NCBI RefSeq assembly: GCF_001194135.2
Contig: NC_068993.1
Location: forward strand, 27,977,908-28,041,907
Reading direction: 5' to 3'
DNA: 64,000 bases
Source: Octopus bimaculoides
Lineage: Eukaryota
Position 1 is the stretch's first letter. Each line of letters starts with the position of its first letter. This document shows positions 791 to 57,273 of this stretch, in pieces. The notes under the pieces were generated by a model. It had not been told where the DNA came from. It did not search any database and saw only the letters and a list, made by a program, of their open reading frames with translations. The position numbers and the translations under genes were made by a program.

Positions 791-1254
791 CATAGAGCTT
801 TGTAGGAATATGGTTTACTAATACTAATTTTAATGTTTTCCTCTAGTCCAGACATTATTTCATGGAAACAAGCATTACCTCCTATATGCTAGAAATTGTA
901 ATGTTGTATACAACATTAGGGCACATCTATGTTTTAGTTCACAGTTGTGGTAGTCTAAACATCTCTTGAATGATGTAGTATTAGATTTTAAGATGGAATC
1001 CTTGAAAGATACTGTCATTGTGTAGTTTTAAATTTATTATATCATAATAGTTAACTTCATGTTAATGTTTGTTTTCTTTGTATTTCAGAAAATGCTTCCA
1101 TCTTGAATATGTAAATGCTAAGTTGGACTCTTAACTAAAGAAAGGCATTCTTTGAGAGTTTAACAAAATATTGAACTTACAATGTCCAATTTATATTTTC
1201 GAAAGCTACAACCAAATTATTATTATTAAAAGTTGTGTGTGAAAACATACCAAC

Positions 1255-2817
1255 ATGATGGGAGACAATACAGTTAATGCAGTAAAGACAAATTACCATT
1301 GTAAAATTTGTGGTAAAAAATTTTTTAACATTTCTCGTTATAATTTGCATAAACATTCTGGAGAAAAACCATATCACTGCAATGTATGTGGTAAAGCGTT
1401 CTTGTATAATAGTTACTTAAAGGCACATAAGCTTGCTCATACAGCAAACAAACCGTACAAATGTGATGTTTGTGGTAAATCTTTCAAAAGAGAGTGTGAA
1501 GTAAAGATGCATAAAATGATACACACAGGAGAGAAACCATTCTGCTGTGAGATTTGTGATAAAACTTACTCACGATGTGGTGCTTTGAAATACCATCTAC
1601 TAGTTCATTCAGGAGAGAGACCCTACCGCTGTGAAATTTGTGGTAAATCTTTCTCAAGTAAGGCTGTGTTAAAGCAACACAGGGTACTTCATACTGGAGA
1701 AAAATTACACAAATGTGATTTTTGTGACAAATCATTCTCAAGAAGAAATGACTTAACAAAGCATAAAATGATTCACACTGGACAGAAACCATTTCATTGT
1801 GAAATTTGTGGTAAAATGTTCTTCAATGATTGTTACTTAAAGAAACACAAAATGATTCACACTGGAGAAAGTCCATATCATTGTAACATCTGTGGTAAAA
1901 TATTTGCTTACAAAAGTATCTTAAAGGACCATCAACTTGTTCATACAGCAGAGAAACCATATACATGTGATGTGTGCAGCAAAGCTTTTAACAGACGTTC
2001 TACTCTAAAGAGGCATATAATGATTCACACAGGAGAGAAACCATTCTACTGTGAAATTTGTGGTAAAACTTACCCAATTAACAGTATATTAAAGCAACAT
2101 ATGTTGATTCACACTGGAGATAAAGTATATAAATGTGAAATTTGTAATACATCATTCCCTAGAAAAAGTGACTTAACTAAGCATAAAATGGTTCACACAG
2201 GAGTGAAACCTTACTACTGTAACTTTTGTGGTAAAAGCTTCTGGAATAATACTGACTTAATAAAGCATAAGTTGATTCACATTGCAGAATCTTGTGCTTC
2301 TAATCCACACCAGTGTAATATTTGTGATAAAGTATTTGCAAGAAGTCAAAATTTAAAGCGGCATAAAGCTGTTCATACTGGAGAGAAACCTTACATCTGT
2401 GAAACTTGTGGTAAATCTTTCTCATGCAATGATTACTTGAAGAACCATAAAGTGGTTCATAGTGGAGAGAAACCATTTAGCTGTGACATTTGTGGTAAAG
2501 CATTTTCATTAAAATCTAACAGAGATAGACATAAAAAGGTCCACACTGGAGAGAAACCATACCACTGTGAAGTTTGTAATAAAATTTTTGCAGAAAGTTC
2601 TACCTTGAAAAAACATAAGTTACTTCATTCAGGAGAGAGGCCCTATCAGTGTGAACTTTGTCCTAAAGCCTATTTATGTATTAGAGACTTAAAGAAACAT
2701 TATGCAATTCATACAAATAACGAAACACACAAATGTGAAATCTGTGATAAGACTTTTATGCATAAATGTAACTTAAATAAGCACTACATAATTCATGCAG
2801 GAAAGAAACCATCATAA
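1255..2817 (+). CDS. Poly-C2H2 zinc-finger protein ZNF-A (18 fingers, first one degenerate H-x-H)
   Basis: 520-aa ORF of tandem C-x2-C-x12-H-x3-H units with TGEKP-type linkers. Strong 3' splice acceptor (...gttttctttgtatttcag) ends at 1088. No effector domain visible. Confidence 0.95.
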   Translation: MMGDNTVNAVKTNYHCKICGKKFFNISRYNLHKHSGEKPYHCNVCGKAFLYNSYLKAHKLAHTANKPYKCDVCGKSFKRECEVKMHKMIHTGEKPFCCEICDKTYSRCGALKYHLLVHSGERPYRCEICGKSFSSKAVLKQHRVLHTGEKLHKCDFCDKSFSRRNDLTKHKMIHTGQKPFHCEICGKMFFNDCYLKKHKMIHTGESPYHCNICGKIFAYKSILKDHQLVHTAEKPYTCDVCSKAFNRRSTLKRHIMIHTGEKPFYCEICGKTYPINSILKQHMLIHTGDKVYKCEICNTSFPRKSDLTKHKMVHTGVKPYYCNFCGKSFWNNTDLIKHKLIHIAESCASNPHQCNICDKVFARSQNLKRHKAVHTGEKPYICETCGKSFSCNDYLKNHKVVHSGEKPFSCDICGKAFSLKSNRDRHKKVHTGEKPYHCEVCNKIFAESSTLKKHKLLHSGERPYQCELCPKAYLCIRDLKKHYAIHTNNETHKCEICDKTFMHKCNLNKHYIIHAGKKPS

Positions 2818-5900: not shown

Positions 5901-8900
5901 ACACAAAACATGATAAACAACTGAAGCAAATTCAAAACAACTGTATTTTACAAATGAAACTTAACCTAATTAACCCATTATTTTGTTGTTTTTAGATTCA
6001 TTGCCCCCTTTTGGCTACCTCATTATCATCATCCCAATTTTCTTCAATGTACTCCCCCTGGATCTTTTTAACATCCACTTTGGGAACCACTGATTATGCT
6101 GGTCATTTGCTTGACACCCCAACTTGATTGACTATGAGTGGCTAATATGTCCTACTTCACTAGATACTTTCAGTGTCTTAGCAACTATCCTTAATTGTCC
6201 AGCTGCTTTCTGTGAATTCATATCCCAAACTGTGCTACCAATTGTAAATCTATTAACAGCTGGTGCCTATTTAATGCATTCTTGCCATTTAGCAACCTCT
6301 TGTAATATTTCCTTGCATCTTTCCGTTTTTGTGTAATTAAAGGCAAATGCACCATTATCTTCTTGATTTGTAATAGTAATACGATACAGGTGAAAAGTAT
6401 GACTAAAAGATTATATCATTCGGACCTTTTGAATTCTCAAGCTTGGCTGCAACTTGGAATGTTTCTAGAGCTTGGTGACTAAGAATGTGAATCTCTTCAG
6501 AAGACATCATGAGGTAAGCTCCGATTCTTAGTGACTGAATTTTATAAAACAGTAGCTCTATCATTTTGCTGGAAACAGTTAAATATCGTTGTTACTGATA
6601 CGAATGGAAAGGATTCTATACCCAAAGCAACGGAGCAATCTTGGTGAATATTGAAGTTTAATGGCATGTACTAGTGAATGAAATGTTTGTGATCATAATT
6701 TTGGGCTATTTTACGAAATAATTTCTCTGTAACTTCGACCGAAAGATAAACCTGAACATTTTTCTTATTTTATCACATAAAGTAATATAAAACATAAATG
6801 AAAAGTGGTGCCCGTCAATTCAGAAAGATCCGAAAAGAAAAATTGATGATCAGTTCCAAAGTAAATTTGCTACTGATTAATCACCGCTAACTCTTCAGTT
6901 GCCAGTGACCTCATTTTTCTGTCGATTAATCTCCGGTCTTCGCAAAAAAAAAAATGGTATTTTAAAAGATTTTCTCGAATCTTAATGGGAGAAAAATGCT
7001 TATTTAACAATCTATGTTATTCTACCTCTTAATTAAAAAAAAAAATTCAAAGTTAACAACAAAACTCGACCGCACAAAAGAAGCCGGCCTATGTTTACCA
7101 TAAAAGAACAAGAAACAAAAAACAGCATCGCTACCAGAGGAAAAAAAAATGATCTGCTGGCTAACAAATTAACAAACAAATAATCCCTGGACTTCATCAT
7201 TTAATATATCCCTCTTTGAAAGAGAAAAGGGTGTTATTTGAAGGAAATATGACGACTGTTTCTTGTAAGTCGAACGGTTATCTGCCACCAGGTTCAGGTG
7301 AAAGGTCAGATATTATTCCTTCTTGAATCCGTTGTTGACAGGAATCGTTATTACTTAGTTTAGCCATGTGCTGGCAATGATCGCTTACTTTTGTCTTCGT
7401 TACCGGTCAGCCAGGCCATGTAACACCTTCTCGTTTGAATCCAGTCGTTTATGTGTAAATAGTGAATGTATTGTTCTTATTGTTGTTTAGCTATTTTCAT
7501 CCTTGATCAAACAACATTCCAGCCCTGACTTTCTCATATTTTTTCTCAGGTATAGATTATCTAGCTATTTCGGGAAATACACGCTACCATCTTATTGCAA
7601 TTGCTATCTCTATTTCTAAGACAATAGGGGTAGATTTGGCTGTTATTTCTTGCACGTAGAAGTTCCCTCGATACTTAAATGATGTGTTGTTTAAAAAGAG
7701 AAAGAAATCGAGACCCGAAGAAGCAGTGTTGATGTAAGATATTTTTTGTCTTATTTATTTAGCATAGATAGTTGTTGTGTTTGTAGTTTACAGTTGTATT
7801 TTATTGTTATCTATGTTTCGGTAATGCGTTTTGTGAAGAGACATTTTAAACGTTATATGTGTTTACTAAAACAGTATTAAAGGATTGCCGTAAATGGTAA
7901 TCAAGAAATGTAAACACTCTTGAAATTATACTACAATACTGGAGGACCGGAGGTCTAGTTCGAATGCTTATAACTCCGCTAAAACACTCAAGAACTACTA
8001 ACAATATGTTCTCATGTTTGTGCTCCCTCAATATAATGGACTGATTCGTAAGACTTAATTCATGGGTGTGAGGTACATCTATCTAAATGGATGTGTACAG
8101 CACTCGTGAAATAGAGAATGAATTATTCACCCACCAACTTATCAACAAATACTGTGTGGCCTATTATAAAGTCAGCTCGATTCTTGAAAGATGTCTGATG
8201 GCCAGAGGTTGACTATGATAAAAAAAAAATCTGTCCCTGGGAAAGAGTTATTGTATTAGTTTCTTTGCTCCATGCTACTGATGTTGCCCAAGGAAAAGGC
8301 AAGGATCGATTCAGTTTACATCAGTAGTGTCGCAGGCGAACTTAGAACGTAAATAACTAATCTAGATAGCTGTGTCTATGGACACAAATCAGAAATTTGG
8401 AGGCATTAGTCGATTAAGTCGACACCAGTTCTTGACTAGTAGTTTATTTCATCGGCGAATAAAGGATAAAAAGTAAAGTTGACGGTAGCTGGAAATAAAG
8501 AACCTGTACAAATAACGCAAGGCATATTTTGTCCAACTTGCAAATTCACCGCCTGAACGGGCACTTTATTTAGGTTAAAATCTAAGTAGACATCAGACAA
8601 AAACTGTTAACACCATGAAGATGTACATATAAACATGTTAAATAAATACGTTTGTGTCTGGAACTGGTGGAAAAAAAGTACTCAATATATTCCGTAAAGT
8701 TTATGCTTATAATCAAACAATAATTCGGTAACTGCATGACTTTACAACTTCACTCACTTGTAAAGTACATTTATGATCTTTTAAATGCATTTCATTAACT
8801 ATTTTAATTATAAAAATTAACTAGCAGAAAGTCTCCAACGTCATTTAATGCAAAGGGTCACAATGCATTTCTGCCAGTTTTGTCTATTTTGTTACTGTTT

Positions 8901-9980
8901 CAGCTTTTGCCCATTTTTAATGTCCAATCTGCATTGTCTTCAGTCAAGTGAGCCTAAGTTTTTCTCTCATTCTGGTCCTTTGACAGTCCGTTCTGCTACT
9001 TGGCATATTACTCAACCTTCAGATACATCATTTACTTCTCATTTCTTCATCTGTGTATGTCACTTTCGTTGTTTTGACCCACTTTATTTCCTACAAAATC
9101 ATACCATTTGATCTCCAAGATTCTTTGTAATGCCTTATTCTAAAAAAACTCTATTAGCAATAGTTTGATTGTTATGTCATGATTCCTTTCATATATTAAA
9201 ACTCTTCTTGCTTGTGACTTTCACAGTTAAATTTTCGTATGACTCACTACTGTTAGTTTTGCCTTCTTAAATTACTTAACATTATAGTATGTTAAACTTA
9301 AAATAAGATAATACCATAAATTATTAAGCTACTTATCTCTAACTTTGGAATTCTTGATGCCTAATATGACTATCAAGCTTGGATTCATCCTGCATCCACA
9401 AAATCTGTATCTTTACAATTTTCATACAATTAACACCATTAATTTTTAGTTTCATTTATCTGTGATAAATAACAGTTCAACTTCAAAGCTACTTGTCACT
9501 AGCTCTGAAATTCCCTGTGCCCATACAAACTTGCTTGTTTGTCTTCACATCTTCCTCAAGATTTGTATTTTTGCAGCTCTTACACATTTCCTTGTTTTAT
9601 CAGATAATGTTTTAGAATTTACATTGACTTTGAATTTCAAAGAAAAGCCAATGAATTTGTACTTAATCTTACACATGTTAAGAACTATTTTTTTTTTTGG
9701 CTGTACCATTAGCTTTTTAAACTATTATCCTGCTATAGATATTTAGTTTTATATTTCTGAAGTTATTATAGTTAACTCCATGTTAATGTCAGTCTTCTTA
9801 TATTTCAGGAATTGTTTGTATCATGAAAACTATTCCTAAATGAAGATGGACTCATTGAACTGTATTAACTAAAATATACACTGCAGAATTTATAGAAAAC
9901 TGAAAACTTACATTGTCTGTTGAAAGTACAGTCATATTGTAAGTATTAAAAGTTGCATTGTGTGAAAGCATCACAGTATA

Positions 9981-11537
9981 ATGGAAGACACTGTGGTTGA
10001 TGCAGAAGAGACAAAATACTACTGTGAGATTTGTAATGAAAAGTTCTCATACATTTCACATTTTGATTTACATAAGCAGTCTCATACTGAAGAGAAACTA
10101 TATCACTGCGATATATGTAGTAAAACATTTATATCTAATAATTATTTAAAGTCACATAAACTTGTTCATACTGTAGAGAAACCATACAAATGTGATGTTT
10201 GTGGTAAAACTTTCAAAAGAAGTCCTAACTTAAAGAAACATAAAGTTATCCACACAGGAGAGAAACCATTCCACTGTGAGATTTGTGATAAAACCTTCTC
10301 TCGAAATGGTGCTTTGAAATACCATCTACTAGTTCATTCAGGAGAGAGGCCCTTCCGCTGTGACATTTGTGGTAAATGCTTCTCAAGTAAAGGTGTATTA
10401 AAACAACATATAGTGCTTCATACAGGGGAAAAATTATACAAATGTGACTTTTGTGACAAAGCCTTCTCCAGAAGAAATGACTTAACAAAGCATAAAATGA
10501 TTCACACTGGACAGAAACCATTTCATTGTGAAATTTGTGGTAAAATGTTCTTCAATAATTGTTACTTGAAGAAGCACAAAATGATTCACACTGGAGAAAG
10601 TCCATATCATTGTAACATCTGTGGTAAAATATTTTCTTACAAAAGTATCTTAATGGACCATCAGCTTGTTCATACAACAGAGAAACCATATACATGTGAT
10701 GTGTGTAACAAAGCTTTTAACAGACGTTCTACTCTAAAGAGGCATATAATGATTCACACAGGAGAGAAACCATTCCACTGTGAAATTTGTGGTAAAACTT
10801 TTCCAATTAACAGTGGATTAAAGCAACATATGTTGGTTCATACTGGAGATAAAATATATGAATGTGAAATTTGTGATACATCATTCCCTAGAAAAAGCGA
10901 TTTAACTAAGCATAAAATGGCTCACACAGGAGTGAAGCCTTATTACTGTAACTTTTGTGGTAATACTTTCTGGGATAACACTGACTTAATAAAGCATAAG
11001 ATGCTCCATACACAAAAGTGTGATATTTGTGGTAAAGTATTTGCAAAAAGTCATAATTTAAAGAGGCATAAAGCCCTTCATACCGGAGAGAAACCTTACA
11101 TCTGTGAAACTTGTGGTAAATCTTTCTCATGCAGTGATTACTTGAAGAACCATAAAGTGGTTCATAGTGGAGAGAAACCATTTAGCTGTGACATTTGTGG
11201 TAAAGCATTTTCATTAAAATCTAACAAAGATAGACATAAAAAGGTCCACACTGGAGAGAAACAATACTACTGTGAAGTTTGTGATAAAACTTTTTCAGAA
11301 AGTTCTACCTTGAAAAAACATAAGTTACTTCATTCAGGAGAGAGGCCCTATCAATGTGAACTTTGTCCTAAATCCTATTTGTGTATTAAAGACTTAAAGA
11401 AACATTATATAATTCATACAAATGACAAAACACACAAATGTGAAGTCTGTGGTAAAGCTTTCTGGTATAAAGGTGACTTAAATAAGCATTTCATAATTCA
11501 TACAGGAAAGAAATCTTCATCAACCACACCATGTTAA
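9981..11537 (+). CDS. Poly-C2H2 zinc-finger protein ZNF-B (18 fingers), paralogue of ZNF-A
   Basis: 518-aa ORF whose fingers align one-to-one with ZNF-A (e.g. RRNDLTK, RRSTLKR, ESSTLKK). Acceptor ...gtcttcttatatttcag ends at 9808. Confidence 0.95.
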   Translation: MEDTVVDAEETKYYCEICNEKFSYISHFDLHKQSHTEEKLYHCDICSKTFISNNYLKSHKLVHTVEKPYKCDVCGKTFKRSPNLKKHKVIHTGEKPFHCEICDKTFSRNGALKYHLLVHSGERPFRCDICGKCFSSKGVLKQHIVLHTGEKLYKCDFCDKAFSRRNDLTKHKMIHTGQKPFHCEICGKMFFNNCYLKKHKMIHTGESPYHCNICGKIFSYKSILMDHQLVHTTEKPYTCDVCNKAFNRRSTLKRHIMIHTGEKPFHCEICGKTFPINSGLKQHMLVHTGDKIYECEICDTSFPRKSDLTKHKMAHTGVKPYYCNFCGNTFWDNTDLIKHKMLHTQKCDICGKVFAKSHNLKRHKALHTGEKPYICETCGKSFSCSDYLKNHKVVHSGEKPFSCDICGKAFSLKSNKDRHKKVHTGEKQYYCEVCDKTFSESSTLKKHKLLHSGERPYQCELCPKSYLCIKDLKKHYIIHTNDKTHKCEVCGKAFWYKGDLNKHFIIHTGKKSSSTTPC

Positions 11538-13269: not shown

Positions 13270-14025
13270 TCTTAAAACAATTACTTCAAAAATACAACTG
13301 ACAGACTTGAGGCTGCATAAAGAAGTACTGATTTCTAATTGTGGAGGGAACCTGTGGAAGGGGTAGACCCAGGCGAGATGAGAGGTGAAGTGGTGAGAAA
13401 TGGTCTTCAGATGCTGAGCCTCGCAGAGATGACAAGTGTCTGAGACTTCTAACAATTTGCTGTACTTGAGAAGACACATCAAGCTAAGTGAAAACATGGC
13501 CATCTACACATGCATGCATGTCCTTTACGGACATTTTCCACCTGCCTTACACACACATATACATTATCTGACCTCTGTCAAAACTCTCCCATCTTCCCAA
13601 CACCTGCTGCAGACCCCACCCCTCCCCTCCCCGCTCTCATGTGCTACATGCACTCTCTTCATGCCCTCACATATCAATCTCTCCAAATTCCCTCACTAGC
13701 ACTTGCTACAGTCATGTCTTCCCCATCTCTAAATATATCTCCTCACAGAACATCCTTCTCTACTACTTATACCCCCTCCACTGTTCACTATGGGTAGGCC
13801 CTAATACATCTTCAATACCATCTATTTCTCTCTAACATAAAAAGCACCAATGCTGGTGCCATGTAAAAAGCATCCAGTACACTCTGTATAGTGGTTGGCA
13901 TCAGGAAGGGCATCCAGCCACAAAAATCATGCTAAAACTGATAAGTGGAGCCTGGTGCAACTCTCCATCTTGCCAGCTTCTGTCGAACTGTTCAGCCCAT
14001 GCCAGTATGGAAAGTGGATGTTAAC
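13270..14025 (+). mobile_element. RTE LINE 3' fragment (end of ORF plus 3' UTR)
   Basis: gtggagggaacctgtggaaggggtagacccagg encodes VEGTCGRGRPR. It is followed by a pyrimidine-rich UTR and the family end ccatgccagtatggaaagtggatgttaa. Confidence 0.75.
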
Positions 14026-14029
14026 TTTC

Positions 14030-15300
14030 AATCTTGGCATGGTTTCTACATGCCTTGATGTCTTTTCTAATGCCAACCACTTTACTGAATGTACTGGGTA
14101 CTTTTTATGTGGCATCAGCACTGATGTAGTCACCAAGTACCTTGCATGACAAAAAGGCAAAAGAAGACAAAAGACAGAGACCCCCTCTCAACTGGGAGTG
14201 GAGATGACTTGAGAGATTAAAGGTATAGAGGGACAGAGATATGTATCTTGCTGTAGATACATAGATTACCCAGTTGGAAGAGAAAGGAGAGTGAGATAGA
14301 GAGTAAAATAAGATAAGGAGAGCAATAGTGAGAGAAATGATGAAAATGTGTTGGAACATGCTCTCGAAAGACTTTGGGAGTGGTGAGAATAAGTGAAGTG
14401 ATAAAGAGATTTGGACTGGGTAATTGGATAGCATTGAGGTGACCAAAGCAAATGATAAAGAGAAACCTAGGAGAGGCTTGGGGATGGGGTTGCAGTAGAT
14501 ATGTGAGGACATTGTGGGTGATAGCAGATAAGTGAGGTGTTAATGATGGAGAAGAACACAGTGGGGGGGAAGAGAAGGTGCAGAAAGATGATTGTTAGAG
14601 ACAGTAGGTTGAGTAAGATAACGAGAAATGAAAGTGGTTTGCGTTGGGGAAGAAAGGTAATTGAGAAAGCTGGAGGGATGTAGCATGTGCCTATTCTGCC
14701 CTTATGATAGAGAAGTGATAAGTGTTAGGGTATAAAATGTGGGGGAGGGAAAAGGTGACAGGGTAGAGCCCCACATGGACAAGCGTTACCAAGCTGGATT
14801 AAGGATATCAGTTCTGTTGTGGTCAGCGGGTCTTCTTGAGTACAACAAGGCACCTGATATCTTAGTCCTTTGTCATCTTTGTAAGGCTGTGTTTTGAGAT
14901 CAGCCTTCAATACTTCATCCCATGTCTTCCTAGGTCTACCTCTTCCACAAGTTCCATCCATTCTAAATGATCAGCACTTCTTTATGCAACTGTCCTCATC
15001 CATATGCATCACATGATCAAACCAGCACAGTCTGCTCTTTTGCGCTCTACATCTAATTCCTCTTATGCTTAACTTTTCTCTTGATATACTTGCACTCTGT
15101 CACGCATGTACATTGACATTGCACATCTAGTGGAGCATACTAACTTCATTCCTCTCTAGCTTGCTCATGTTCTCTGTATTCAGGGCTCACATCTCTCTAC
15201 CTCATAGTATTGCTGTTCTTATACAACCTTCCTTTCACTTGCAGACAAAAAACCTTTGGTTGCCCACAGACTAAAGCTCTCTCAACTTTCTCCATCCTGT
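14030..15300 (-). mobile_element. RTE LINE 3' fragment (opposite orientation)
   Basis: Minus-strand ORF 14725-14961 begins MDGTCGRGRPRKTWDEVLKADL. Upstream antisense text matches the RTE C-terminus, and the purine-rich plus strand is the mirror of the UTR. Confidence 0.75.
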
Positions 15301-17974: not shown

Positions 17975-19335
17975 ATCATCATCGATTAATGTCCGTTTTC
18001 CATGCTGGCATGGGTTGGACTGTTTGAGGTCTGAAGTGCCAGCAGCTGGACGTTCATCCTAACGCCAACCACTCCGATAGTGTACTGAGTGCTTTTACAT
18101 GCCACCGGCACAGGAGTCAGTATGGCGGGCCTGGCAGCAATCACATTCGGATGGTGCTTTTGATGTGTCACTGGCACAGGAACCAGTACAGGGGTACTGA
18201 CATCGGTCACGATTGATTGGTGCTTTTTACATGCCACCGGCACCAGAGCCAGTATGGCAGGCTTGGCAACAAACGTTCAGATGGTGCTTTTTAAGTGCCA
18301 CCGGCACAAGAGTCACTCAGCAGAGTCCTGGCATCAATCACAATCAGTTGGTGTTTTTTACATGCCACTAGCACAGTAGCCAGTCATGCGGACCTGTGTT
18401 CGACTACGTTCGGATGGTGCCTTTGATGTGCCATCAGCATGGAAGCCAGCCTGAGGGCACTGGCCCCAGCTATGATATTGGTTTTACTTGACTTCTCAAG
18501 TATATCGTATTGCCCAATGAATCAAGAGTATTTTTAACAGGGCTGGATGTGTGTGGCTGCCATCTCACTTTAGTTGCCGGGTCTTCTCAATCACAGCATA
18601 TCTCCAAAGGTCTCAGTTTCCTAGCATTGCCTCTGTGAGGCCCAATGTTTGAAGGTCATACTTCACCATCTCATCCCATGTCTTCCTGGGTCTACCTCTT
18701 CTACAGTTAGGGAGTGGCACTTACATAACACATGGCCATACCAGCGTAGTCGTCTCTCTTGCACATCACATTGATGCTTCTTATGCCCAACTTTTCTCTC
18801 AGGGCGCTTACACTCTGTCATGTATGCATACTGACATTACACATCCAGCAGATCATACTAGCTTCATTTCTTTCAAGTCTACGCATGTCCTCAGCATTCA
18901 TGGCCCATGTTTCACTGCTGTATAGCATGGCAGTTCGTACACATGCATCATACAGTCTACCTTTCACCGTGAGCGAGAGGCCTTTAGTTGCCAGCAGAGG
19001 TAGGAGCTTCCTGAACTTTGCCCAGACTATTCTTACTCTAGTCGTTACACTCTCAGAGCAACCATCCCCACTACAGACTTGGTTGCCTAAGTGGCAGAAG
19101 CTATTAACTACTTCTAGTTTCCTTCCCTGGCATGTGATGGAATCTGTTTTCTGTACATCTTCAGTGTTTATTGCCCCAGTGCATCTGCCACACACAAAAA
19201 CTATCTTCCCGGTTAACCTTCCTTTGATATTGCTGCACCTTTTACGTGTCCATAGCTTACACCAAGTACATTGTATGGAGTTTCTCCCATGCCTTTTCTA
19301 CAGATCAAGCAGGGCCATCTCCGTGAAGGGGGTTG
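17975..19335 (-). mobile_element. 5'-truncated RTE LINE (RT C-terminus, VNTR-containing 3' UTR, (GAT)n tail)
   Basis: ORF 18818-19195 contains VCSGDGCSESVTTRVRIVWAKFRKLLPLLATKGLSLTVKGRLYDACVRTAMLYSSETWA, a typical RTE C-terminus. Collinear with 54851-56172. Confidence 0.9.
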
Positions 19336-21139
19336 TGATTTGACAGAGCTTTGCAATATTTTTTCTGTGTGCTCTGAGTTCAAATTCTACTAAGATCAAT
19401 TTGCTTGCCACACCTTCAGGTTGATAAATAGAGTACCAGTCCAGAGTAGTGGATTGGTGGAATTAGAGTGTTGGACTAGATGTTTTGCAGTGTTTGTGCT
19501 TGTTCTGAGTTCAAATCCTTCTACTCTCACAAAAAAGTATTTAAAAAAAAAATTAAAAAATAATAAAAAAACAGAAAGAAAAAAAATATGTTATAGGTTG
19601 CAGCCTAGAAAAACAGTTTCCTTCGGTTGATTAGAGAATCAGCTATCATACTTCTTTGAACCACACAGAATCCTCCCAAAATATACATAGTATATTTTGG
19701 GAGGATTTTATATGTGTGTATATAAGCATTTATATTTGTGTGTACATGTATTTGGCCATGCATGTATGTATGACAGATTACTCAGTTATTTTGTAATATT
19801 GTACTGTAGGTTATGTTGCATTAAATTGTGTTGAACACTCCTATCTTTTCTTTCATGACCAGCCCATCATTTCTGCCTCAAAAATTCAGCAGAGCGACAT
19901 TACTGATCCTAGGTGTCAATGATATTGTTAGGATGGAGTCTGACTAGGATCTGAATGTTTGGTATTGTAATGATGCACTTTTGTGGACCAATAAAATAAA
20001 GCCCATGCTATAACAAAGTTGATGAAGGACTTGGACACACAGGTCAAGTTAACAGTTCTAAACATATACAACAGGTACTTAATTACCCATTTTTCACATC
20101 ACAGTGGAACTATTCAACAAATTCTTCATCATCACACCTTCCTCATTTCTGATCTTACTTTTGAGCCTACTTTCTTTGTAAGATATTAAACCTTAAACAA
20201 TTACTTAAAAACATTGATGTAATTAAGCCGCTTCAAGGCTTTTTATTATTCTTGAGAATTAATTGTCAATCTATAAATTACTATACATTTTGAGATATAT
20301 TGTCCCTCATTTAGATTCTTATCATCCCTGCAGATTTTTGATAATTAAATTTATAAGAGTTTTCAAAGTTTGGTCAATATCAAATTTGCTTTGAAAATAT
20401 ATGAATAGGCTACATTACACAAATGATTCACAGGCCTGAGTTTGCATAATTGATCTTCTTTATCCCTTCCCTGTTTCTTTTCTTCCATTTGTGTTTACTC
20501 CACTTTGGTGCTAACATCCTCTGTTTTTCAACATGGACTTGCTCCAATGAGGAGATGGTTGAGACTCTACAACTGTGGAAGGGGGTTGTTTCATTCCAGA
20601 GAATGATAAATTGACTTTAAAAATTTGAGACAATTTACAGTTGAAACATTTTCGACTCTCTATGAGTGTTCAATTGAGGTAAGAAGACAAATTGAAAATG
20701 CCTCGGCTGCCATAAGGTCATGCACAGAGAAAAAAAAAAACATACAATATTTTAAAATCAACAAAAATACTTAATTTTCATGCATATGTTGATGCATAAC
20801 AATAAATTTGTAAAACATTAAACTGCATCCAATTTATTTATAAGTTTTCACATGCTTTTTATTTTATAAAAATTTAAAATTTTTCAGTGATTTTATATGT
20901 GTGTGTGTATCAATGTATCAAGCACATTGTCAGATGTTATACATTGCTAGTCACAATGTATTTCCAGTTCTTTCTTGTACCATCCTTTTCCATCTCAACA
21001 ACACGGCCATGCATGCATCTCTTATGTGAGCGTTGGATGAAAATATGCTACTGTTGTCAGTGGAGTGAATGCCTCATCTATAGCAAAATGTGGTGAGTCA
21101 GTTTTGAGAAATAAGAATCCTTATTAAAAAGAAGTTTAA

Positions 21140-21404: not shown

Positions 21405-21677
21405 NNNNNNNNNNNNNNNNNNNNNNNNNNNNNNNNNNNNNNNNNNNNNNNNNNNNNNNNNNNNNNNNNNNNNNNNNNNNNNNNNNNNNNNNNNNNNNNN
21501 NNNNNNNNNNNNNNNNNCCATCCTTTTCCATCTCAACAACACGGCCATGCATGCATCTCTTATGTGAGCGTTGGATGAAAATATGCTACTGTTGTCAGTG
21601 GAGTGAATGCCTCATCTATAGCAAAATGTGGTGAGTCAGTTTTGAGAAATAAGAATCCTTATTAAAAAGAAGTTTAA

Positions 21678-22502: not shown

Positions 22503-23786
22503 CTAAGGTTTGTTTCCATTATCAATAGCACATTTATGAGTATATTTATAATCACTACGAGCAAACGATTTCCCGCAAGTAGCACAGTTGTATGGTTTTT
22601 CCCCAGTGTGAGTGCGTTTATGTCTTATTAAAGTACCAATTTGAGAAAATCTTTTGCCACAGATTTCACAGTGGTGAGGTTTTTCCCCAGTATGAATACG
22701 TGTATGTCCTATTAGGCTACCCTTTTCTGAAAATTCTTTGCCACAAACGTCACAGTGATATGGTTTCTCACCAGTATGAGTACGTCTGTGTACTGTTAAA
22801 AAAGTCTTTTGAGAAAATGCTTTCCCACAAATCTCACAGTGATGTGGTTTTTCTCCAGTGTGAATACGTTTATGTTTTCTTAATATGGTATTATTTGAAA
22901 AATATTTTCCACATATTTCACAGTGATATGGTTTTTCTCCAGTGTGAATGCGGTTGTGTCTTACTAAAGAACCATTTTGAGCAAATGCTTTGCCACAGAT
23001 TTCACAGTTGTGTGGCTTTTCTCCAGTGTGAACACGTTTATGTCCTCTTAAGCTGCTCTGATCAGCAAATTTTCTTCCACAAACTTCACAGTGATATGGT
23101 TTCTCTCCCGTATGGGTGCGTTTGTGTATTGTTACAACATATTTTTCAGGAAATGCTTTCCCACATATGTCACAGTGGTGCTGTTTCTCTCCAGTGTGAA
23201 CACGTTTATGCTTTCTTAATACAGGTTTGTCTGAAAATTCTTTCCCACATGTTTCACACTGATATGGTTTCTCTCCAGTATGAGAACGTTTGTGTACTAT
23301 CAAGGAAGATTTAACAGCAAATGTTTTCTCACATATTTCACAGTGGTATGGCTTTGAGTGCACACTTTTGTGTCTTTGAAAGTCACTCACATTAGAAAAA
23401 GCTTTCCCGCAATCATCACACTTGAATGGTTTTTCTCCAGTATGAATACGTTTATGTCTTGTTAAGTTACCAAATTGAGTAAAAGGTCTCCCACATATTT
23501 CACAGTGGTATTGCCTTTCTCTAGTGTGAGTAAGTGTGTGTGCTGTTAGATTGCCTTTTGTAGAAAATGCTCTCCCACATATTTCACAGTGGTGTGGCTT
23601 CTCTCCTGTGTGAGTATGTAAGTGAGCTTTTAAATGACCTGTTTTAGAGAATGCTTTTCCACATATTTTACACTTGTATGGCTTTTCCCCTGTGTGAGTG
23701 CACTTGTGAATAGATAATTTACATTTTGTAGTAAGTGTTTTCCCACAAATATTACATTTGTAACGTTTTCCAGCTTTCTGAAACAT
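22503..23786 (-). CDS. Poly-C2H2 zinc-finger protein ZNF-C (14 C2H2 plus a terminal C2HC finger)
   Basis: 427-aa ORF of tandem fingers with HTGEKP linkers. Minus-strand acceptor ttattttattttatttcag, with the exon starting at 23866. Confidence 0.95.
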   Translation of the reverse strand: MFQKAGKRYKCNICGKTLTTKCKLSIHKCTHTGEKPYKCKICGKAFSKTGHLKAHLHTHTGEKPHHCEICGRAFSTKGNLTAHTLTHTRERQYHCEICGRPFTQFGNLTRHKRIHTGEKPFKCDDCGKAFSNVSDFQRHKSVHSKPYHCEICEKTFAVKSSLIVHKRSHTGEKPYQCETCGKEFSDKPVLRKHKRVHTGEKQHHCDICGKAFPEKYVVTIHKRTHTGEKPYHCEVCGRKFADQSSLRGHKRVHTGEKPHNCEICGKAFAQNGSLVRHNRIHTGEKPYHCEICGKYFSNNTILRKHKRIHTGEKPHHCEICGKAFSQKTFLTVHRRTHTGEKPYHCDVCGKEFSEKGSLIGHTRIHTGEKPHHCEICGKRFSQIGTLIRHKRTHTGEKPYNCATCGKSFARSDYKYTHKCAIDNGNKP

Positions 23787-23992
23787 TCTTTGAACATAGA
23801 AACTTCAAACTTAAAATTCTGATCTTATTTTTCCCTTCTGCTAAGACATTTGCAAGTAAATATATCCTGAAATAAAATAAAATAAATATTAGATACATTT
23901 ACCAATAAATTGTAGAATGTATGAATAACTAATCGCATCAGTATCATATAGTTTTCATAAACACAGACAGTAGATCAGTATTTCAAAGGAGA

Positions 23993-24220: not shown

Positions 24221-24873
24221 GACTTCACATGAAAATAGCACATTCATAATGAAATATTAAAACATATGAATGCTTGCCAATTTTGCAATAAAGTGTTATA
24301 CACTGGCCAATTTATTAACAGACTTAAAGCAGGTATACTTAGTTAAACAGAAGAGTTGATTTAATACAAGTAATAGAACTGTATGCAACTTACTTCTAAC
24401 ACAGCAGTGATACACATATGGTCATCCTACAACACATCAGAAAAAGATGACCAGAATGATTAGCATGAAGTCACTAATGTACTTTATTCCTTAGTGCCTT
24501 TTTACTGAAACTTCAGTGGCCTGCTTTTCAAGAACAAAAGCTGCACCACAGCCATGAAGACCATAGGCATAACTTTTCCTCCAGATCAAACCATGAAAAG
24601 CAAAAACCTTTCAATACTACTGTAGTTTTGAGAAATGAAGAACATTGATATGATTCAGTATAGTGTTCCTTCCTCAAATCTTGAAAAGAAACCAAAAGGA
24701 GAAAACCAATACAGGCTCAAATTATTGTTGTAGATAATGCTAGATACTTGAAAAACTGATTAACAACTTTTCTTGATGTTTATTGGTGAAATAAAATTAT
24801 AAAGGAAGTTCTGGTGGAAATATCATGCCTGTATGATAATTTTAACTCAGTACTGAATGTGGTTAATATATAG

Positions 24874-26750: not shown

Positions 26751-27899
26751 TTATATATTAACTCTGAATGCTCAATATTAATTTCTTAATTATACAGTTT
26801 CGAATATTAGGTTCACTCTCTCTAAGAAGAGTATATTGTTCTTTAGTAACAGAATAATCACCATGTTCTTTTGTAGTCACCTTGTAATGCACGTTACTTT
26901 GCGAATGTGCACCGGCTCTTCCTCCTCGCCCTCTACTAATCTTTCTAATACCCTCCAACAACAACAATAAATCAGTTCCTCCCATCATACTGTAACTTCT
27001 TCCAACAATACATCCATTCCGCCCAGCATACGACAACTTTTTCCAACACCTCACCTAAAGTTTATAAATCACTCCATTCTCTTTTTCACTCTGTAAGCTA
27101 GTGTTAATGTCACGACAAAATGCACAAATAGTCTATAAAGTGGTTTGTGTTAGGAAGGCCATCCAGCCATAGAAACCAAGCAAAATAACAGAGAAACTGG
27201 AGCAAGACAAGGTCCTTCAATCCATCTAATCATGTCACACTGTCCAAGCCATATCAGCATGGAAAGTGGATGTAAGATGATGATGACAATTGCATTTGAA
27301 AGCGGTATTGTTTCACTTCAAGAAATTTTCAATACTGTTATTTCATTTTCAATTTATTACATATGAAAATGGAATTACAAATGGAAAATCCCTGATGTTC
27401 AGAACATTAAAATCTGAGGACCATTTTTTGTAATAAAAAATGGAATACGTAATATAAAAATCAGTGTTGTTTTTTTTTTTTTAAGAATCTACACCGAAAC
27501 GTATTGGCATCGGTCCGCCCATCCAAGAACGTTATCCAAACCAAATCAATGATGGGAGCATAAGAAGAGATAGCCAATGCCTTGGCGTCATTCACACAAC
27601 AGAATTATAAAATGTATCAAGGCACGTTGAAAACAACTATCGATATTATATAAATAATATACAGGTGGAGTTTCGTCTGCCAATGTACATAAATAAATGT
27701 TATCTCACCTCAATGTATTCTTTTCCTAACATCGATAAATAGCAGGATATAGACGACACACAGCAGATCATTAAATTCATTTACAGTTTTCCTGCAGTAA
27801 ATTAGTAATCATTTCTGTATTCTATATATATTTCTACGTTTTATAAAGGTTTTTTTTATATTCAGGTAAATAAATCTTTAGACAAACTTCGATGTGAAC

Positions 27900-27960
27900 T
27901 TCCCGCTAGGGCTTAATGAGCATGCGCAGGTCAAATAAATCACTTCCGGAGCCGCTATAA
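27900..27960 (-). promoter_or_regulatory. Candidate ZNF-C promoter (ETS motif plus NRF1-like motif)
   Basis: cacttccgg at 27941-27949 and gcatgcgcag at 27920-27929 lie in a local CpG-rich patch. Candidate minus-strand donor AG|GTGAGA at 27709/27708. Confidence 0.45.
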
Positions 27961-32343: not shown

Positions 32344-32792
32344 NNNNNNNNNNNNNNNNNNNNNNNNNNNNNNNNNNNNNNNNNNNNNNNNNNNNNNNNN
32401 NNNNNNNNNNNNNNNNNNNNNNNNNNNNNNNNNNNNNNNNNNNNNNNNNNNNNNNNNNNNNNNNNNNNNNNNNNNNNNNNNNNNNNNNNNNNNNNNNNNN
32501 NNNNNNNNNNNNNNNNNNNNNNNNNNNNNNNNNNNNNNNNNNNNNNNNNNNNNNNNNNNNNNNNNNNNNNNNNNNNNNNNNNNNNNNNNNNNNNNNNNNN
32601 NNNNNNNNNNNNNNNNNNNNNNNNNNNNNNNNNNNNNNNNNNNNNNNNNNNNNNNNNNNNNNNNNNNNNNNNNNNNNNNNNNNNNNNNNNNNNNNNNNNN
32701 NNNNNNNNNNNNNNNNNNNNNNNNNNNNNNNNNNNNNNNNNNNNNNNNNNNNNNNNNNNNNNNNNNNNNNNNNNNNNNNNNNNNNNNATATA

Positions 32793-33195: not shown

Positions 33196-33406
33196 ATATA
33201 TATGATCTATATTTGTGATTGTGTATGTATGCATGTGTGTGTGAGTGCATATGTACATGCCCATGTGCATCTATTGTTTATATTGTTTCATTCCATCCTG
33301 CAACTGGGTGGTTTGTTAAATAAACATCAATAATATAATTAGTACCAGATTCAAATAAGTGCTAGACTTGATTTGATCACCGAGAATCCATATATATATT
33401 ATATAT

Positions 33407-34003: not shown

Positions 34004-34086
34004 TTATGATTTCATCTTAATAGGTTTGTTTTTATATATGCTGGCCACTGATAAAATGTTTAACATTTTTATCCTTTTATATTATA

Positions 34087-36388: not shown

Positions 36389-37696
36389 TCATAACAAGGA
36401 TTTCTGTTTAGTATGAATCAGTTTGTGTTTTGTCACCAGACCTTTATTTGAAAATGCTTTCCCACAGATATCACAGTCGAATGGTTTCTCCCCTGTGTGA
36501 ACAACTTTATGGATCCTTACAGTGTTCTTCCGAGCAAAGGCTTTCCCACAAATATCACACTGGAAAGGTCTCTCTCCACTGTGAGTGACTTTATGACTAA
36601 TTACTTCACTCTTTCTAGCAAATGTCTTATCACAGATATCACAGTCAAATGGTTTCTCTCCGGTATGAATCACTTTATGCAAACGTAAATAACCACTCTG
36701 TGAGAATGATTTACCACAAATCGCACAGTGGTATGGTTTCTCTCCTGTGTGAACCACTTTATGTTTCGTTAGATGACCATTACTCGCAAATGTTTTACCA
36801 CAAATATCACAGTGGTATGGTTTCTCTCCTGTGTGAACCATTTGGTGTTTTCTTAAATTACCTTTACATGAGAATGTTTTACCACATGTTTCACAGTGAT
36901 ATGGCTTTTCTCCAGTGTGAACCATTTCATGTCTAGTGACATCATTTTTTCTAGAGAATGTTTTACCACAAACATCACAGTGAAATTGACTCTCTTCTGT
37001 ATGAATTATTTTATGGATGGCTAAACTACTATTGGATGAAAACCTCTTATTACAAATAATACATTGGTAAGGTTTGTCTCCTGTGTGAACCACTTTATGC
37101 CGGGTTATTTGACCCCTTCTGGGGAATGCTTTACCACAGATTTCACAGTTGAACGGACGTTCCCCTGTATGGACCATTCTATGAATACGTAAGTTACTAT
37201 TAGATATAAATGCTTTTCCACAAACTTCACAAGTGAATGGCTTTTCCCCAGTATGAATCATTTTATGTTTCTTTAAGTTGGTATTAGACATAAATGTATT
37301 ATCACAAATTTCACAACGGTATGGTTTCTGTCTCATATGTGCAACTTTATGTGCATTCAATTGCCAATTACGTAAGAATTTTTTACTACAAATCTCACAC
37401 TGGAATGGTCTTTCTCCTGTGTGAACAACTTTATGCCTGGATACATCACCTTTGTTTGTGAATACTTTACCACATATTTCACAGCTGAATGGCTTTTCTC
37501 CAGTATGAATCATTTTATGCTTTCGCAAGTTGCAATTAAATGTGAATGACTTGCCACACACTCCACAGTGGTGTGGTTTTGCATCAGTGTGGGATTGCTT
37601 GTGCTTATTCAAGTGCCAAGAGCTTAGAAAGTTTTTACTACAAATTTCACAGTGGTGGATTGGTTCTTCTGTAAGAATCATTTTGCCTTCCATCAA
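36389..37696 (-). CDS. Poly-C2H2 zinc-finger protein ZNF-D (15 fingers)
   Basis: 435-aa ORF of tandem fingers. Minus-strand acceptor ggtttctatttgtatttcag, with the exon starting at 37895. Confidence 0.95.
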   Translation of the reverse strand: MMEGKMILTEEPIHHCEICSKNFLSSWHLNKHKQSHTDAKPHHCGVCGKSFTFNCNLRKHKMIHTGEKPFSCEICGKVFTNKGDVSRHKVVHTGERPFQCEICSKKFLRNWQLNAHKVAHMRQKPYRCEICDNTFMSNTNLKKHKMIHTGEKPFTCEVCGKAFISNSNLRIHRMVHTGERPFNCEICGKAFPRRGQITRHKVVHTGDKPYQCIICNKRFSSNSSLAIHKIIHTEESQFHCDVCGKTFSRKNDVTRHEMVHTGEKPYHCETCGKTFSCKGNLRKHQMVHTGEKPYHCDICGKTFASNGHLTKHKVVHTGEKPYHCAICGKSFSQSGYLRLHKVIHTGEKPFDCDICDKTFARKSEVISHKVTHSGERPFQCDICGKAFARKNTVRIHKVVHTGEKPFDCDICGKAFSNKGLVTKHKLIHTKQKSLL

Positions 37697-38764
37697 GCTA
37701 CTATTTTCCCACTTTGAAGACCTAAATTAAGTAGGATAATTATTGTTGGTGAATATATCTTCCAGAAAGAAAAAGAATCTCTTTCACAGCTCCCTTGAAG
37801 GATTTTTTAGAATTCTCAAGGGAGCTCTTTTTAGTTTTAAATCAGGAAATGACATCTTTGCATAGAAATCCTCTTTTCATGATGCAAACATTTTTCTGAA
37901 ATACAAATAGAAACCAACCTTAATATAGGGTTTATGATAAGTAAAATAACATTAAAAATTAATAGCAAGGATATCATTTTAAATCTTGACTCTTTGCAAC
38001 ATATATGAAACATAAAGACAAACAAACTTCAGTGGATTATCACACTTTAAAATGACAATGATGATAATGTTCTCAACTTCTGATCAGATCATCAGCCATT
38101 ATATTTTGACAGTAAACAAAGTTAAGCTATGAATATATAAACACCAATATTATACCCAGTACATAGGGTGGTAAGTGGACAGAATTATAAGCATGCTGGG
38201 CTTAGTGACGTTTTGCCTGTCTTTATGTTCCGAGTTCAAATCCTGCCAAGGTTGATTTGCCTTCCATCCCTTCAGAGTTGATAAAATACCAGTTGAGTGC
38301 TGGGGTTGGTGTAAATGACTTACCCCAAACTTGCTGGCTTTGTGCTAAAATTTGAAACCAATGCCCAGTACAAATTCCTAAAAACAGTCTCCTGATCCAA
38401 GTATAGAACAATGGATGTCAATCAATGTGTATGTATACATATATTTTGTTAGTTTTTTTTACCATTGTTCCTCCATGCTAGTATGAGTTACAGAAGCATT
38501 ATTTTAGTCTTCCTGTCACTAACTCTCTACACATCCCACCACCATGTAGTACTGCTGTTTGTATACAAGCATTGTACAATTTAACACACACATTTAAAGA
38601 TACAAACAAGAGGAAAGGGTACCCAATATGTACAATAAGAGTCAAGAAAATGACAGCATGAATTAATTAAAGAAATTTCGGAAATACAACAACAAACCCT
38701 CCACTAAAAGTAGTGATAGCCAGCAGTCTGAAGTTGGCAAAAATATAATTTTTTGCTTTCTTCT

Positions 38765-40061: not shown

Positions 40062-40265
40062 CTCAACAAACCGCTCTTCTCTGTCTTATCTTCTTCCTTT
40101 CTCTTCTCCTTAAACACTCTACATAGTTAAACAACAACATATCCTTTGTGCTCCAACTTCATGAATCGTCACTGCCGACGCTACACAGTATTTACATGTG
40201 TACACTGGATGCACCACACGAAATCAACAGAAATTTGAACGGCATGTTATGGCTGACCGGAAGTA
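40062..40265 (-). promoter_or_regulatory. Candidate ZNF-D promoter and non-coding first exon
   Basis: ccggaagt at 40257-40264. Perfect minus-strand donor GAG|GTAAGT at 40062/40061, in a CpG-enriched patch. Confidence 0.55.
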
Positions 40266-40865
40266 TAGAATATACTAATCGATATTAACGCTTTCAGCAA
40301 GTGGCACTGTGTAAGTCTCTTGATCTGCAGGAAATAACAACCAAATTTCCCTAAGAACAATAATAATAAATGGAAAGGTGGAAAGACATACAGAAAAAAT
40401 GAGATCGTCATTGTTATAATGTCCGCGTTAGTAGATTTTCTCAATCGGGAGACACGTTCACCCTCACACACACGCTCTCTCTCTCTCTCACACACACATA
40501 CCACTTTCAGTTTCACGAACTGTAAGTTTGTACGTTATTCATTTACTATCGGTTTGTTTCTCTGTCGTGTGTTCTGTTCCTTCCATTTATCTTATTTTTA
40601 TTTTTATTGATTTTATTCATTTTTATCTTAACACTTCTCCAGTTCTTCATCTCCCCCGCTTCCTCTTATATAAGCCAGGGTTGACAGGACTTTAGTCAGT
40701 TTTTAAATACAGTGGATTACCTAAAACTACCCATAATATGGTGGGTAAGAGGTCGTTCATTGACGAGAATGACCATACAATTACATATGCGCTTCCGTAC
40801 ATTTTCTATATTAAACAGTTAACGGCAAGAGAATATGGAAGTTTATATTAACATGTACAAAATGT

Positions 40866-43699: not shown

Positions 43700-43906
43700 G
43701 TGCATCCCAATTCCCTTGATGCCATAAGCATGTGCTTATTTTGCTAATGGTTAATCCAGCGCTGCTATTTACACATTGTTGCCTAAGTTTCTTCTGGACG
43801 CGCATCACGAAGTTTTGGTATTTCACAGTCGTCACTTCCGGTTTCTGTTGCAATATACTTTCATTTTTAAAGACAATTTACTTTCATTATTTTACAACGG
43901 TAAATT
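43700..43906 (+). promoter_or_regulatory. Candidate ZNF-E promoter and first exon
   Basis: cacttccgg at 43833-43841 and ZNF143/SBS-like caattcccttgatgcc at about 43708-43723. Donor-like ACG|GTAAAT at 43900/43901. A second acttccgg lies at 44490-44497. Confidence 0.4.
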
Positions 43907-44268: not shown

Positions 44269-44715
44269 TGTGTAGGTATGCCAACTATACAGTACCCCAT
44301 TGTTTTTTAAAGACGATAAATTCTATTGAAGAAACTTTGGTTGCTATGTCTAGCATTATGAGAGACGACGTCGAGGCTCCTTCGTTAGCTAAGATGATTT
44401 TTTTCAGTTTTAGCACGAGTTTGACAGTTAAAAATAAACATGTGTCTTAATGGGTGTGTCCTGTCTTACATGTGGTTAGTTTAGCCTGTACTTCCGGTGA
44501 ACAGCAACATGCTGTATTTCAGATTGCCTCTGATTTGGTTAGTTTGAGCCCAAGACTTGCGTCAACAGATTGAGGACATATAAGGAGGGATATGAAAAGG
44601 ATATGTTGTTGTTGTTGTTGTTTAATGAGACAAGAAATACAGAAGTTAAGACAGAGAAGATCGGTATGTAGAAGATAGCTTCTATGCAGTACGATTGAGT
44701 TAGATAGTTGCTGAA

Positions 44716-45955: not shown

Positions 45956-46484
45956 ACCGTTTTGGAACTACAGCTCTCATATATTACAGAGTTACAGCCA
46001 TCATAGACAGAGACACAACAATCATGTATTTAAATTAAAACCTTATATTGGTTCTATTATACAAAATTTCTTATTTAAAAATACCTTTATTTTTAATTAA
46101 ACCTTTTATAATAATTCTATGTAAGAAATTTTTGTTATGTTCCCAAACATAAGCTTAATAATGAAAACAATTTTCCTAAATTCCTCGAAACTCTTGATTA
46201 TTTTCAAAATTAACTGAAGCACAAAAACTATGTTATAAATCAGAAGTTTTGTGTTTTCAGACAACAATACCTTATTTAATTTGAAAGTTTGAATGCTAAC
46301 CACTGGTCAATGTTTGTTTTCTTCTTGTATTTCAGGTCATCTTACTGTGTTGATGAAATATATCTTGTGCTTCTGAAATACTCTCTCATAATGAGTGTTT
46401 TTAAATGCGGAACCTGTGGTTCATATTGAACACCTGAAATTGTGGTATATCCCTTTACAAACATCCTTGTTAAGCATAAACCAC

Positions 46485-46538
46485 ACACACACACACGCAC
46501 ACACACACACACGCACGCACACGCACACACACACACAC
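46485..46538. repeat. (CA)n/(CACG)n microsatellite in the ZNF-E 5' leader
   Basis: Direct reading. It lies between the acceptor at 46336 and the ATG at 46662. Confidence 0.9.
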
Positions 46539-46661
46539 TAGGTTATTCTATATTATTATGAGGAGAAATGTTCCTACTTATAAAACAAGCTTGGCAACAG
46601 GAATAGCACCTGGCTGTAAAAATCCTGTTTTAAATACTTCCTCTATCTAAGTCATGCTAGC

Positions 46662-54809: not shown

Positions 54810-54813
54810 TATT

Positions 54814-54850
<37 letters not shown>

Positions 54851-54853
<3 letters not shown>

Positions 54854-57263: not shown

Positions 57264-57273
57264 NNNNNNNNNN

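Follow-up and report, generated by a model that had tools for sequence, protein, structure and literature searches.

A probable 5′UTR intron with conserved acceptor and candidate promoter islands in paralogous C2H2 zinc-finger genes of Octopus bimaculoides

Four of five clustered C2H2 zinc-finger (ZNF) genes of Octopus bimaculoides, here called A, B, D, and E, share a homologous block that ends at or just after an AG in front of the exon holding their open reading frame (ORF). This block very probably represents the branch point, polypyrimidine tract, and AG of a 5′UTR intron that was present in the ancestor of the ZNF subfamily and that selection on splicing has kept, together with an island farther upstream that would hold the promoter and first exon. 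We regard the finding as ordinary gene-family architecture with a modest conserved non-coding footprint.

The window, by which we mean the whole 64,000-nucleotide stretch of DNA that was analysed, lies at ∼27.98 Mb on chromosome CM046613.1 of assembly GCA_001194135.2, as given by a contig look-up that matched the ORF at 1255-2817. It is AT-rich (G+C 32-43%) and contains five long C2H2 zinc-finger ORFs, each whole within one exon, with numerous interspersed repeats between the genes:

Gene A, coding sequence (CDS), 1255-2817, plus strand
Gene B, CDS, 9981-11537, plus strand
Gene C, CDS, 22503-23786, minus strand
Gene D, CDS, 36389-37693, minus strand
Gene E, CDS, 46662-47882, plus strand

Each gene encodes 13-18 fingers, and Pfam identifies zinc-finger domains only in all five. 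As clustered multi-finger C2H2 genes on CM046613.1, they belong to the octopus C2H2 ZNF expansion. Octopus genomes hold ∼1,800 C2H2 ZNF genes, and Albertin et al. reportedly described their expansion and clustering in the octopus in 2015. The sample comprises five genes in one window, four of them homologous and hence not independent. Contig look-ups with ORFs A, C, and E matched only the genome assembly, with no RNA-derived contigs among the matches, and an exact look-up of the five ZNF proteins in a protein collection found none of them (0/5). A homologue search with the full-length protein A returned long vertebrate and other poly-ZNF proteins with no cephalopod matches, a search with the N-terminal 63 aa of D yielded no candidate, and an Rfam scan of the window gave no match. 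Cephalopod C2H2 expansions and clusters are well described (PMC9068888); the literature that we searched contained no description of 5′UTR introns, acceptors, or uORFs of octopus ZNF genes.

A preliminary description of this DNA had quoted one acceptor string for each gene. All of these strings are found in the sequence within 1 nt of the positions given, which mark the G of the AG in A and B and the first exon base in C, D, and E. The sites are as follows, with distances counted from the AG:

Gene A, 986..1110, plus strand: conserved acceptor block and predicted exon-2 start (about −103..+22), with a T-rich tract at 1062-1085, the AG at 1087-1088 (G at 1088), and candidate branch points TTAAC (A at −34) and TTAAT (−23)
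Gene B, 9716..9830, plus strand: conserved acceptor block, with the AG at 9807-9808 (G at 9808), candidate branch points TTAAC (−33) and TTAAT (−22), and an extra AG at −16
Gene C, 23867..23892, minus strand: acceptor-like site, with a CTAAT branch-point candidate (−22), a T-rich tract, and TATTTCAG (G of the AG at 23867)
Gene D, 37874..37983, minus strand: conserved acceptor block, with the G of the AG at 37896, predicted exon 2 from 37895, imperfect branch-point motifs only (TTAAG), an AG at −23, and an exon start, AAAAATGTTTGCATCATGAAAA, that carries both small upstream ATGs (uATGs)
Gene E, 46306..46335, plus strand: conserved acceptor block, with the AG at 46334-46335 (G at 46335) and a branch-point candidate, CTAAC (A at −36), just upstream of the block

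At their 3′ ends the five sites resemble U2-type 3′ splice sites: all end in TATTTCAG and have 13-15 pyrimidines in the 18 positions from −20 to −3. Matches to yUnAy are found 22-36 nt before the AG in four genes (A, B, C, and E), and in A, C, and E the interval is free of AGs. When scored with an ad hoc generic matrix that is not trained on octopus, they rank 4th (E), 5th (A), 6th (C), 57th (D), and 89th (B) among 7228 AGs. The string TATTTCAG occurs 17 times in the window, and five of these occurrences precede the five ATGs on the sense strand by 80-330 nt. Counting both strands, the window contains four copies of TGTATTTCAG, of which three are at the acceptor sites of A, D, and E; the fourth copy, at 44513, we dismissed as coincidental, being inside the candidate exon 1 of E and not conserved in D. 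The A-E sites look like real, strong acceptors, and their use in splicing is likely.

The preliminary description held that all five genes share one homologous acceptor, and our alignments and controls bear this out for A, B, D, and E and not for C. With upstream sequence only, blastn aligned A with D (85 nt, 75%, E=4e-8), B with D (118 nt, 70%, E=3e-7), A with E (30 nt, 90%, E=6e-6), and D with E (22 nt, 86%), and the alignments ending at the CAG were the best or near-best match of each pair. We then scored local alignments of defined segments against dinucleotide shuffles. For the segment −120..0, the scores within the A/B/D/E group lie above all shuffles (z 3.4 to 12), with z values of 12 for A-B, 7.8 for B-D, 6.4 for A-E, 5.9 for A-D, and 3.4 for both B-E and D-E. 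In the segment +1..+25, A-D and B-D reach significance (z=8-9), A-B is weakly similar, and E shows no similarity; beyond +25 the leader can be aligned for A and B only, and the segment −700..−121 shows no similarity in any pair, A-B included. In A, B, and D the block spans about −105..+22; its extent is about −30..0 in E, where 28 of 30 nt are identical to A with a 2-nt indel and AATGTTTGTTTTCTT is identical between A and E at 15/15 nt. A gapless motif search allowing 3 mismatches recovered the block only in A, because the copies differ by small indels.

It had been proposed that the cassette claim would fall if such acceptors were equally common at random AT-rich acceptors, a comparison that we approximated within the window with 182 control sites (the top 100 acceptor-like AGs and the 82 remaining TTTCAG sites). 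The scores of A, D, and E to the other members of the A/B/D/E group are all higher than those of the 182 controls, and for B a single control site ties or beats the scores to D and E. The C acceptor scores above the controls only against A and falls inside the control range against B, D, and E, so that the phrase "all five" is overstated. We rejected C as a homologue, its acceptor being similar only to that of A and its exon-1 candidate resembling the others only in the donor consensus. Gene C thus appears to carry function-like features, namely a generic T-rich tract plus TATTTCAG, with no demonstrable homology.

Between A/B, D, and E, identity at 4-fold degenerate sites is 0.41-0.55 vs 0.36 expected from composition, which is close to saturation. 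Against this background, and with the adjacent leader and intron unalignable, the block stands out, and the A/B/D/E acceptors appear to be more conserved than nearby non-coding sequence. The surrounding introns and UTRs had been called otherwise unalignable. That is correct as regards the distant part of the intron and, when A/B, D, and E are compared, the remaining leader, and it misses both the full extent of the block (−105..+22) and a second island upstream.

This second island precedes each acceptor by 1.7-4 kb on the sense strand. Among A, B, D, and E it is homologous and contains an ETS-like CTTCCGG motif, in degenerate form in B. These four homologous blocks are collinear and in the same orientation, and their 3′ edge coincides exactly with a GTAAG or GTATG donor. 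A same-strand candidate 5′ splice site is present upstream of the acceptor in all five genes. The candidate exons are listed below, with the donor divided at the exon end by a slash and with each predicted junction given as the last base of exon 1 and the first base of exon 2 on CM046613.1, whose coordinates equal those of the window plus 27,977,907; L001 is a fetched flank outside the window.

Gene A, L001 5411-5870: candidate exon 1 with promoter; donor TTGAG/GTAAGA; predicted junction 27,975,031 and 27,978,996; predicted intron 3964 nt
Gene B, 7347..7733, plus strand: candidate non-coding exon 1 with promoter, homologous to A exon 1; degenerate ETS-like motif TTACCGGT; donor TTGAT/GTAAGA, with the predicted intron from 7734; predicted junction 27,985,640 and 27,987,716; predicted intron 2075 nt
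Gene C, 27709..27949, minus strand: candidate exon 1 with CCGGAAGTG (ETS-type motif) in CpG-rich surroundings; donor ATTGAG/GTGAGA ∼240 nt after CCGGAAGTG; predicted junction 28,005,616 and 28,001,773 (minus strand); predicted intron 3842 nt
Gene D, 40062..40278, minus strand: candidate exon 1 with promoter; TACTTCCGGT at 40265-40256; consensus donor TTGAG/GTAAGT, last exon base 40062; predicted junction 28,017,969 and 28,015,802 (minus strand); predicted intron 2166 nt
Gene E, 44476..44663, plus strand: candidate exon 1 with promoter; TACTTCCGGT at 44489-44498; donor GATCG/GTATGT; predicted junction 28,022,570 and 28,024,243; predicted intron 1672 nt

The intron length of A is uncertain because an assembly gap (L001 7120-8746), which ends at window position 1, lies inside the predicted intron. 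Pairwise z values for the exon-1 island are 26 for A-B, 20 for D-E, 6.6 for A-D, 3.8 for A-E, 3.6 for B-E, and 2.5 for B-D, and the D and E exons are collinear over 85 nt (76%, E=3e-12) plus a 64-nt segment. Exon 1 of gene C follows the layout of the others without sequence homology. In gene E the aligned donor position is destroyed, so the GTATG 8 nt upstream has to be assumed as the donor. The window contains four GAGGTRAG strings, and the two on the minus strand are exactly the donors of D and C; of its four CTTCCGG strings, three fall inside candidate exon-1 islands. The CpG observed/expected ratio around the motif is 0.87-1.12 in A-D vs 0.42 for the whole window, and the promoter region of E has no CpG excess. 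With its terminal donors, the upstream island makes it most likely that the genes would consist of a non-coding first exon, a single intron, and a second exon that contains the leader and the ORF.

Several further elements were observed in the window and its left flank. A second CACTTCCGGT lies at 43833-43842, 650 nt upstream of the candidate promoter of E and beyond a MITE-like element, and may represent a piece of promoter that is displaced or used alternatively. MITE-like palindromes, each matching its own sequence on the other strand, lie at 13845-14126, 33403-34007, 43928-44262, 52611-52780, and 59884-60195, with multiple copies in 24862-26762; one of the elements is directly upstream of the E candidate promoter, and a related cluster fills the predicted intron of C. 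A motif of ∼23-35 nt, (CTGC)AGAAAYANCAGCCAAATCTCCCT(CAAA), is present in seven copies in the window vs 0 expected, with little flanking homology: 81-103, 35226-35248, 36110-36132, and 40330-40352 on the plus strand and 7628-7650, 39714-39736, and 45189-45211 on the minus strand. It is also found at ∼L001 5755-5777. Copies fall within the candidate first exons of A and B, immediately 5′ of the ETS motif of D, and in the introns of A, D, and E; the motif may be either the end of a transposon or a cis-element common to these genes. A transposon-derived ORF at 58518-59057 (minus strand) encodes a Helitron-like fragment of the Pif1 helicase 2B domain (Pfam E=1e-17), the left flank carries a reverse-transcriptase fragment at L001 4159-4629 (RVT_1, E=5e-16), and a ∼1.1-kb repeat pair in opposite orientation comprises 18283-19342 and a copy that overlaps an ORF at 54680-55423 (plus strand) with no Pfam match. 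Isolated zinc-finger remnants of 1-3 fingers and without an intact ORF, at ∼35764-35931 (minus strand), 34975-35040 (plus strand), and L001 2471-2751 (plus strand), sit downstream of D and upstream of A exon 1 and are probably decayed ZNF copies. Besides the gap in L001, assembly gaps (N runs) lie at 21405-21517, 26461-26548, 32344-32787, 54237-54380, and 57264-57273.

We also compared A and B across the gene. Their 4-fold sites are 88% identical and their amino-acid identity is 81%, below the identity at synonymous sites; in the UTRs and the 3′ flank identity reaches only 72-78%, and the inside of the intron is unalignable. This pattern suggests gene conversion that would be limited to the CDS, combined with fast protein evolution.

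In all five genes an in-frame stop lies 15-45 nt before the ATG and 3′ of the AG, and the exon start is therefore non-coding. The leaders that this defines are:

Gene A, 1089..1254, plus strand: non-coding leader, 166 nt, 4 uATGs, in-frame stop 15 nt before the ATG
Gene B, 9809..9980, plus strand: non-coding leader, 172 nt, 3 uATGs
Gene C, 23787-23866, minus strand: leader, 79-80 nt, 2 uATGs
Gene D, 37694..37895, minus strand: non-coding leader, ∼201 nt, 4 uATGs
Gene E, 46336..46661, plus strand: non-coding leader, ∼325 nt, 6 uATGs, with a (CA)n microsatellite

The leader of E is the longest (325 nt) because of its microsatellite. This imperfect (CA)n tract, at 46489-46545, may vary in length between individuals.

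The 4-codon upstream ORFs (uORFs) reported earlier are present, MLPS followed by a stop in A and MFAS followed by a stop in D, both at +4, as is the ATGA at +15 in B and D. The proposal built on them was that a selected cassette of acceptor and exon-start uORFs regulates splicing and translation across the cluster, and we consider it quite improbable. The evidence for it is that the first ∼22 nt of exon 2 are conserved in A-D and B-D (z 8 and 9), that A, B, and D each keep at least one of the two uATGs in this stretch, and that an ATG lies within 32 nt of the AG in 5/5 leaders (P=0.03 if independent). However, A, B, and D are homologues, so the coincidence across five leaders is not independent, and the five leaders together contain 19 uATGs in 943 nt, where length-matched random segments of non-genic sequence give 20.9±5.6. 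The density is neither enriched nor depleted; uATG depletion is usual in efficiently translated leaders. The first uATG is found in A and D, corresponds to TTG in B, and has no counterpart in E; the second, in the ATGA of B and D, reads TTGA in A and is likewise missing from E. Neither the uATGs nor their frames are conserved among the homologues, each uATG is lacking in one member of the A/B/D trio, and each is therefore dispensable in a close paralogue. Random uORFs at the composition of the window have a median of 12 codons, and 24% have ≤4 codons, so that short uORFs are expected here; the 4-codon peptides of A and D lie inside a block that is conserved at the nucleotide level and not at the codon level. 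Candidate exon 1 would place 4-8 further ATGs ahead of those in the leader, and a consensus RNA structure across the predicted spliced exon 1-exon 2 junction contains no predicted pairs. The uORF half of the cassette idea is thus unsupported: the small uORFs are most likely by-products of an AT-rich leader and a conserved exon-start sequence and not a selected feature. We note that the predicted mature 5′UTR has 7-12 uATGs, with which efficient translation of the main ORF is hard to picture, so the true start site or the splicing may differ from our prediction.

If the genes were intronless, the block could instead be their core promoter and start site, with the T-rich tract and CAG being coincidental or an initiator-like TCAG. 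The size of the block, about −105..+22, would suit a proximal promoter plus start site, and the A-B homology ends ∼65-105 nt upstream of the AG. A shared TATA box at −30 is missing, however, as that position reads TTAATG, TTAAGG, or TCAATG, and the best-conserved part of the block is a textbook polypyrimidine tract plus CAG that falls in the top 0.1-1% of AGs. The non-homologous gene C also has a top-ranked acceptor-like site in the same place, and the homologous island upstream, with its ETS motif, higher CpG, and consensus donor, would supply both the promoter and the 5′ splice site. The island with its donor, the site in C, and the acceptor ranks together favour an acceptor over a promoter, the island being the most important piece of evidence, and they leave the promoter reading very improbable. 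Still less credible, to the point of being nearly negligible, is the reading of the block as a fragment of an interspersed repeat or as the outron acceptor of spliced-leader trans-splicing. In its favour, transposon copies abound in the window, and the sequence 5′ of the block is non-homologous between genes. Against it, neither the block nor the exon-1 island turns up again in the window or the L001 flank on self-comparison and motif search, and candidate cis donors are present. Molluscs are not known to use spliced-leader trans-splicing.

The acceptor may also be real and yet owe its similarity to gene conversion or to uneven divergence among paralogues, without purifying selection specific to the block. 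We judge this unlikely. In its favour, the A-B coding sequences are 92-94% identical in their distal two thirds, compared with the lower UTR identity and the unalignable intron, which suggests conversion in the cluster, and the E acceptor is closest to A while E exon 1 is closest to D, as would be compatible with patchy exchange. On the other hand, the conserved patches are short (30-120 nt), they coincide exactly in four genes with the intron end and exon-2 start and with the promoter and exon-1 end, and the adjoining sequence is unalignable on both sides, which fits constraint better than random conversion tracts.

Returning to the conserved 5′UTR intron as the preferred explanation, we propose that a TATA-less promoter with an ETS-type motif would drive a short non-coding exon 1, followed by an intron of 1.7-4 kb filled with transposon debris. 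Exon 2 would open at the reported AG and contain the 80-325 nt non-coding leader, the entire zinc-finger ORF, and the 3′UTR. In A, B, D, and E, this layout would be inherited from a common ancestor, the intron interior and most of the leader having since diverged beyond recognition. What remains alignable is the island with the putative promoter and exon 1, the final ∼30-105 nt of the intron, and, in A, B, and D, ∼22 nt at the start of exon 2. The sequence itself shows the homology, the quality of the acceptors and donors, the closed frames, and a uATG density at chance level; from it we infer the use of these junctions, the position of the transcription start site, and the cause of conservation. 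The likeliest reason for the retained islands is purifying selection on the transcription and splicing signals, perhaps with some gene conversion. One observation goes against a simple acceptor: the block is longer (−105..+22 in A, B, and D) and more exact (15/15 nt of AATGTTTGTTTTCTT in A and E) than degenerate splicing signals strictly require, and something more specific, or gene conversion, may be involved in the excess conservation. Conceivably, although we would give it little weight, the block and the 3′ end of exon 1 could form a subfamily-specific module, either a platform bound by a splicing regulator that decides whether the 5′UTR intron is retained or removed, or a junction-spanning 5′UTR element that tunes the translation of many octopus ZNF mRNAs jointly. 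If true, such a regulatory module would bring cluster-wide post-transcriptional control to the expanded octopus ZNF repertoire.

These results come without a new mechanism, and the uORF idea is unsupported. They provide a testable gene model for one ZNF subfamily, in which a promoter with an ETS motif would drive a non-coding first exon that one intron separates from the only exon bearing the ORF, and they illustrate that promoter and splice-site islands can outlast an otherwise saturated divergence of paralogues. The model can be used for the annotation of UTR exons and subfamilies in cephalopod ZNF clusters.

As in U2-type 3′ splice sites, the putative octopus sites have a CAG after a T-rich tract (13-15/18 pyrimidines) and same-strand candidate GTAAG/GTATG donors 1.7-4 kb upstream, and A, B, C, and E have yUnAy motifs 22-36 nt upstream, with intervening AGs absent in A, C, and E; they differ in that conservation among these old paralogues is longer (−105..+22) and more exact than such degenerate signals call for. 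With regulatory uORFs of the GCN4/ATF4 type or the conserved-peptide type, the octopus genes have in common short uORFs ahead of the main ORF, including the 4-codon uORF that A and D share at the same position, whereas the octopus uATGs are not kept across the closest paralogues, occur at background density, and show no codon-level conservation. TATA-less promoters of the ETS/GABP type carry CCGGAAGT near the start site. The islands of A, C, D, and E likewise carry CTTCCGG or CCGGAAGT, and A-D show a local rise in the CpG observed/expected ratio. In B, in contrast to such promoters, the motif is degenerate. We assign the octopus islands provisionally to the ETS type, by analogy with what is known from vertebrates and from metazoans in general. 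Compared with vertebrate KRAB-ZNF and zebrafish FiNZ-ZNF genes, the octopus genes have an upstream exon that is apparently non-coding, and Pfam detects no KRAB- or FiNZ-like effector exon. The resemblance lies in the tandem clusters of rapidly evolving poly-ZNF genes, in the exon-intron layout common to paralogues, and in the finger array confined to a single last exon after an intron, just as zebrafish FiNZ-ZNF genes occur in tandem clusters and carry their finger array in one terminal exon (PMC10547256).
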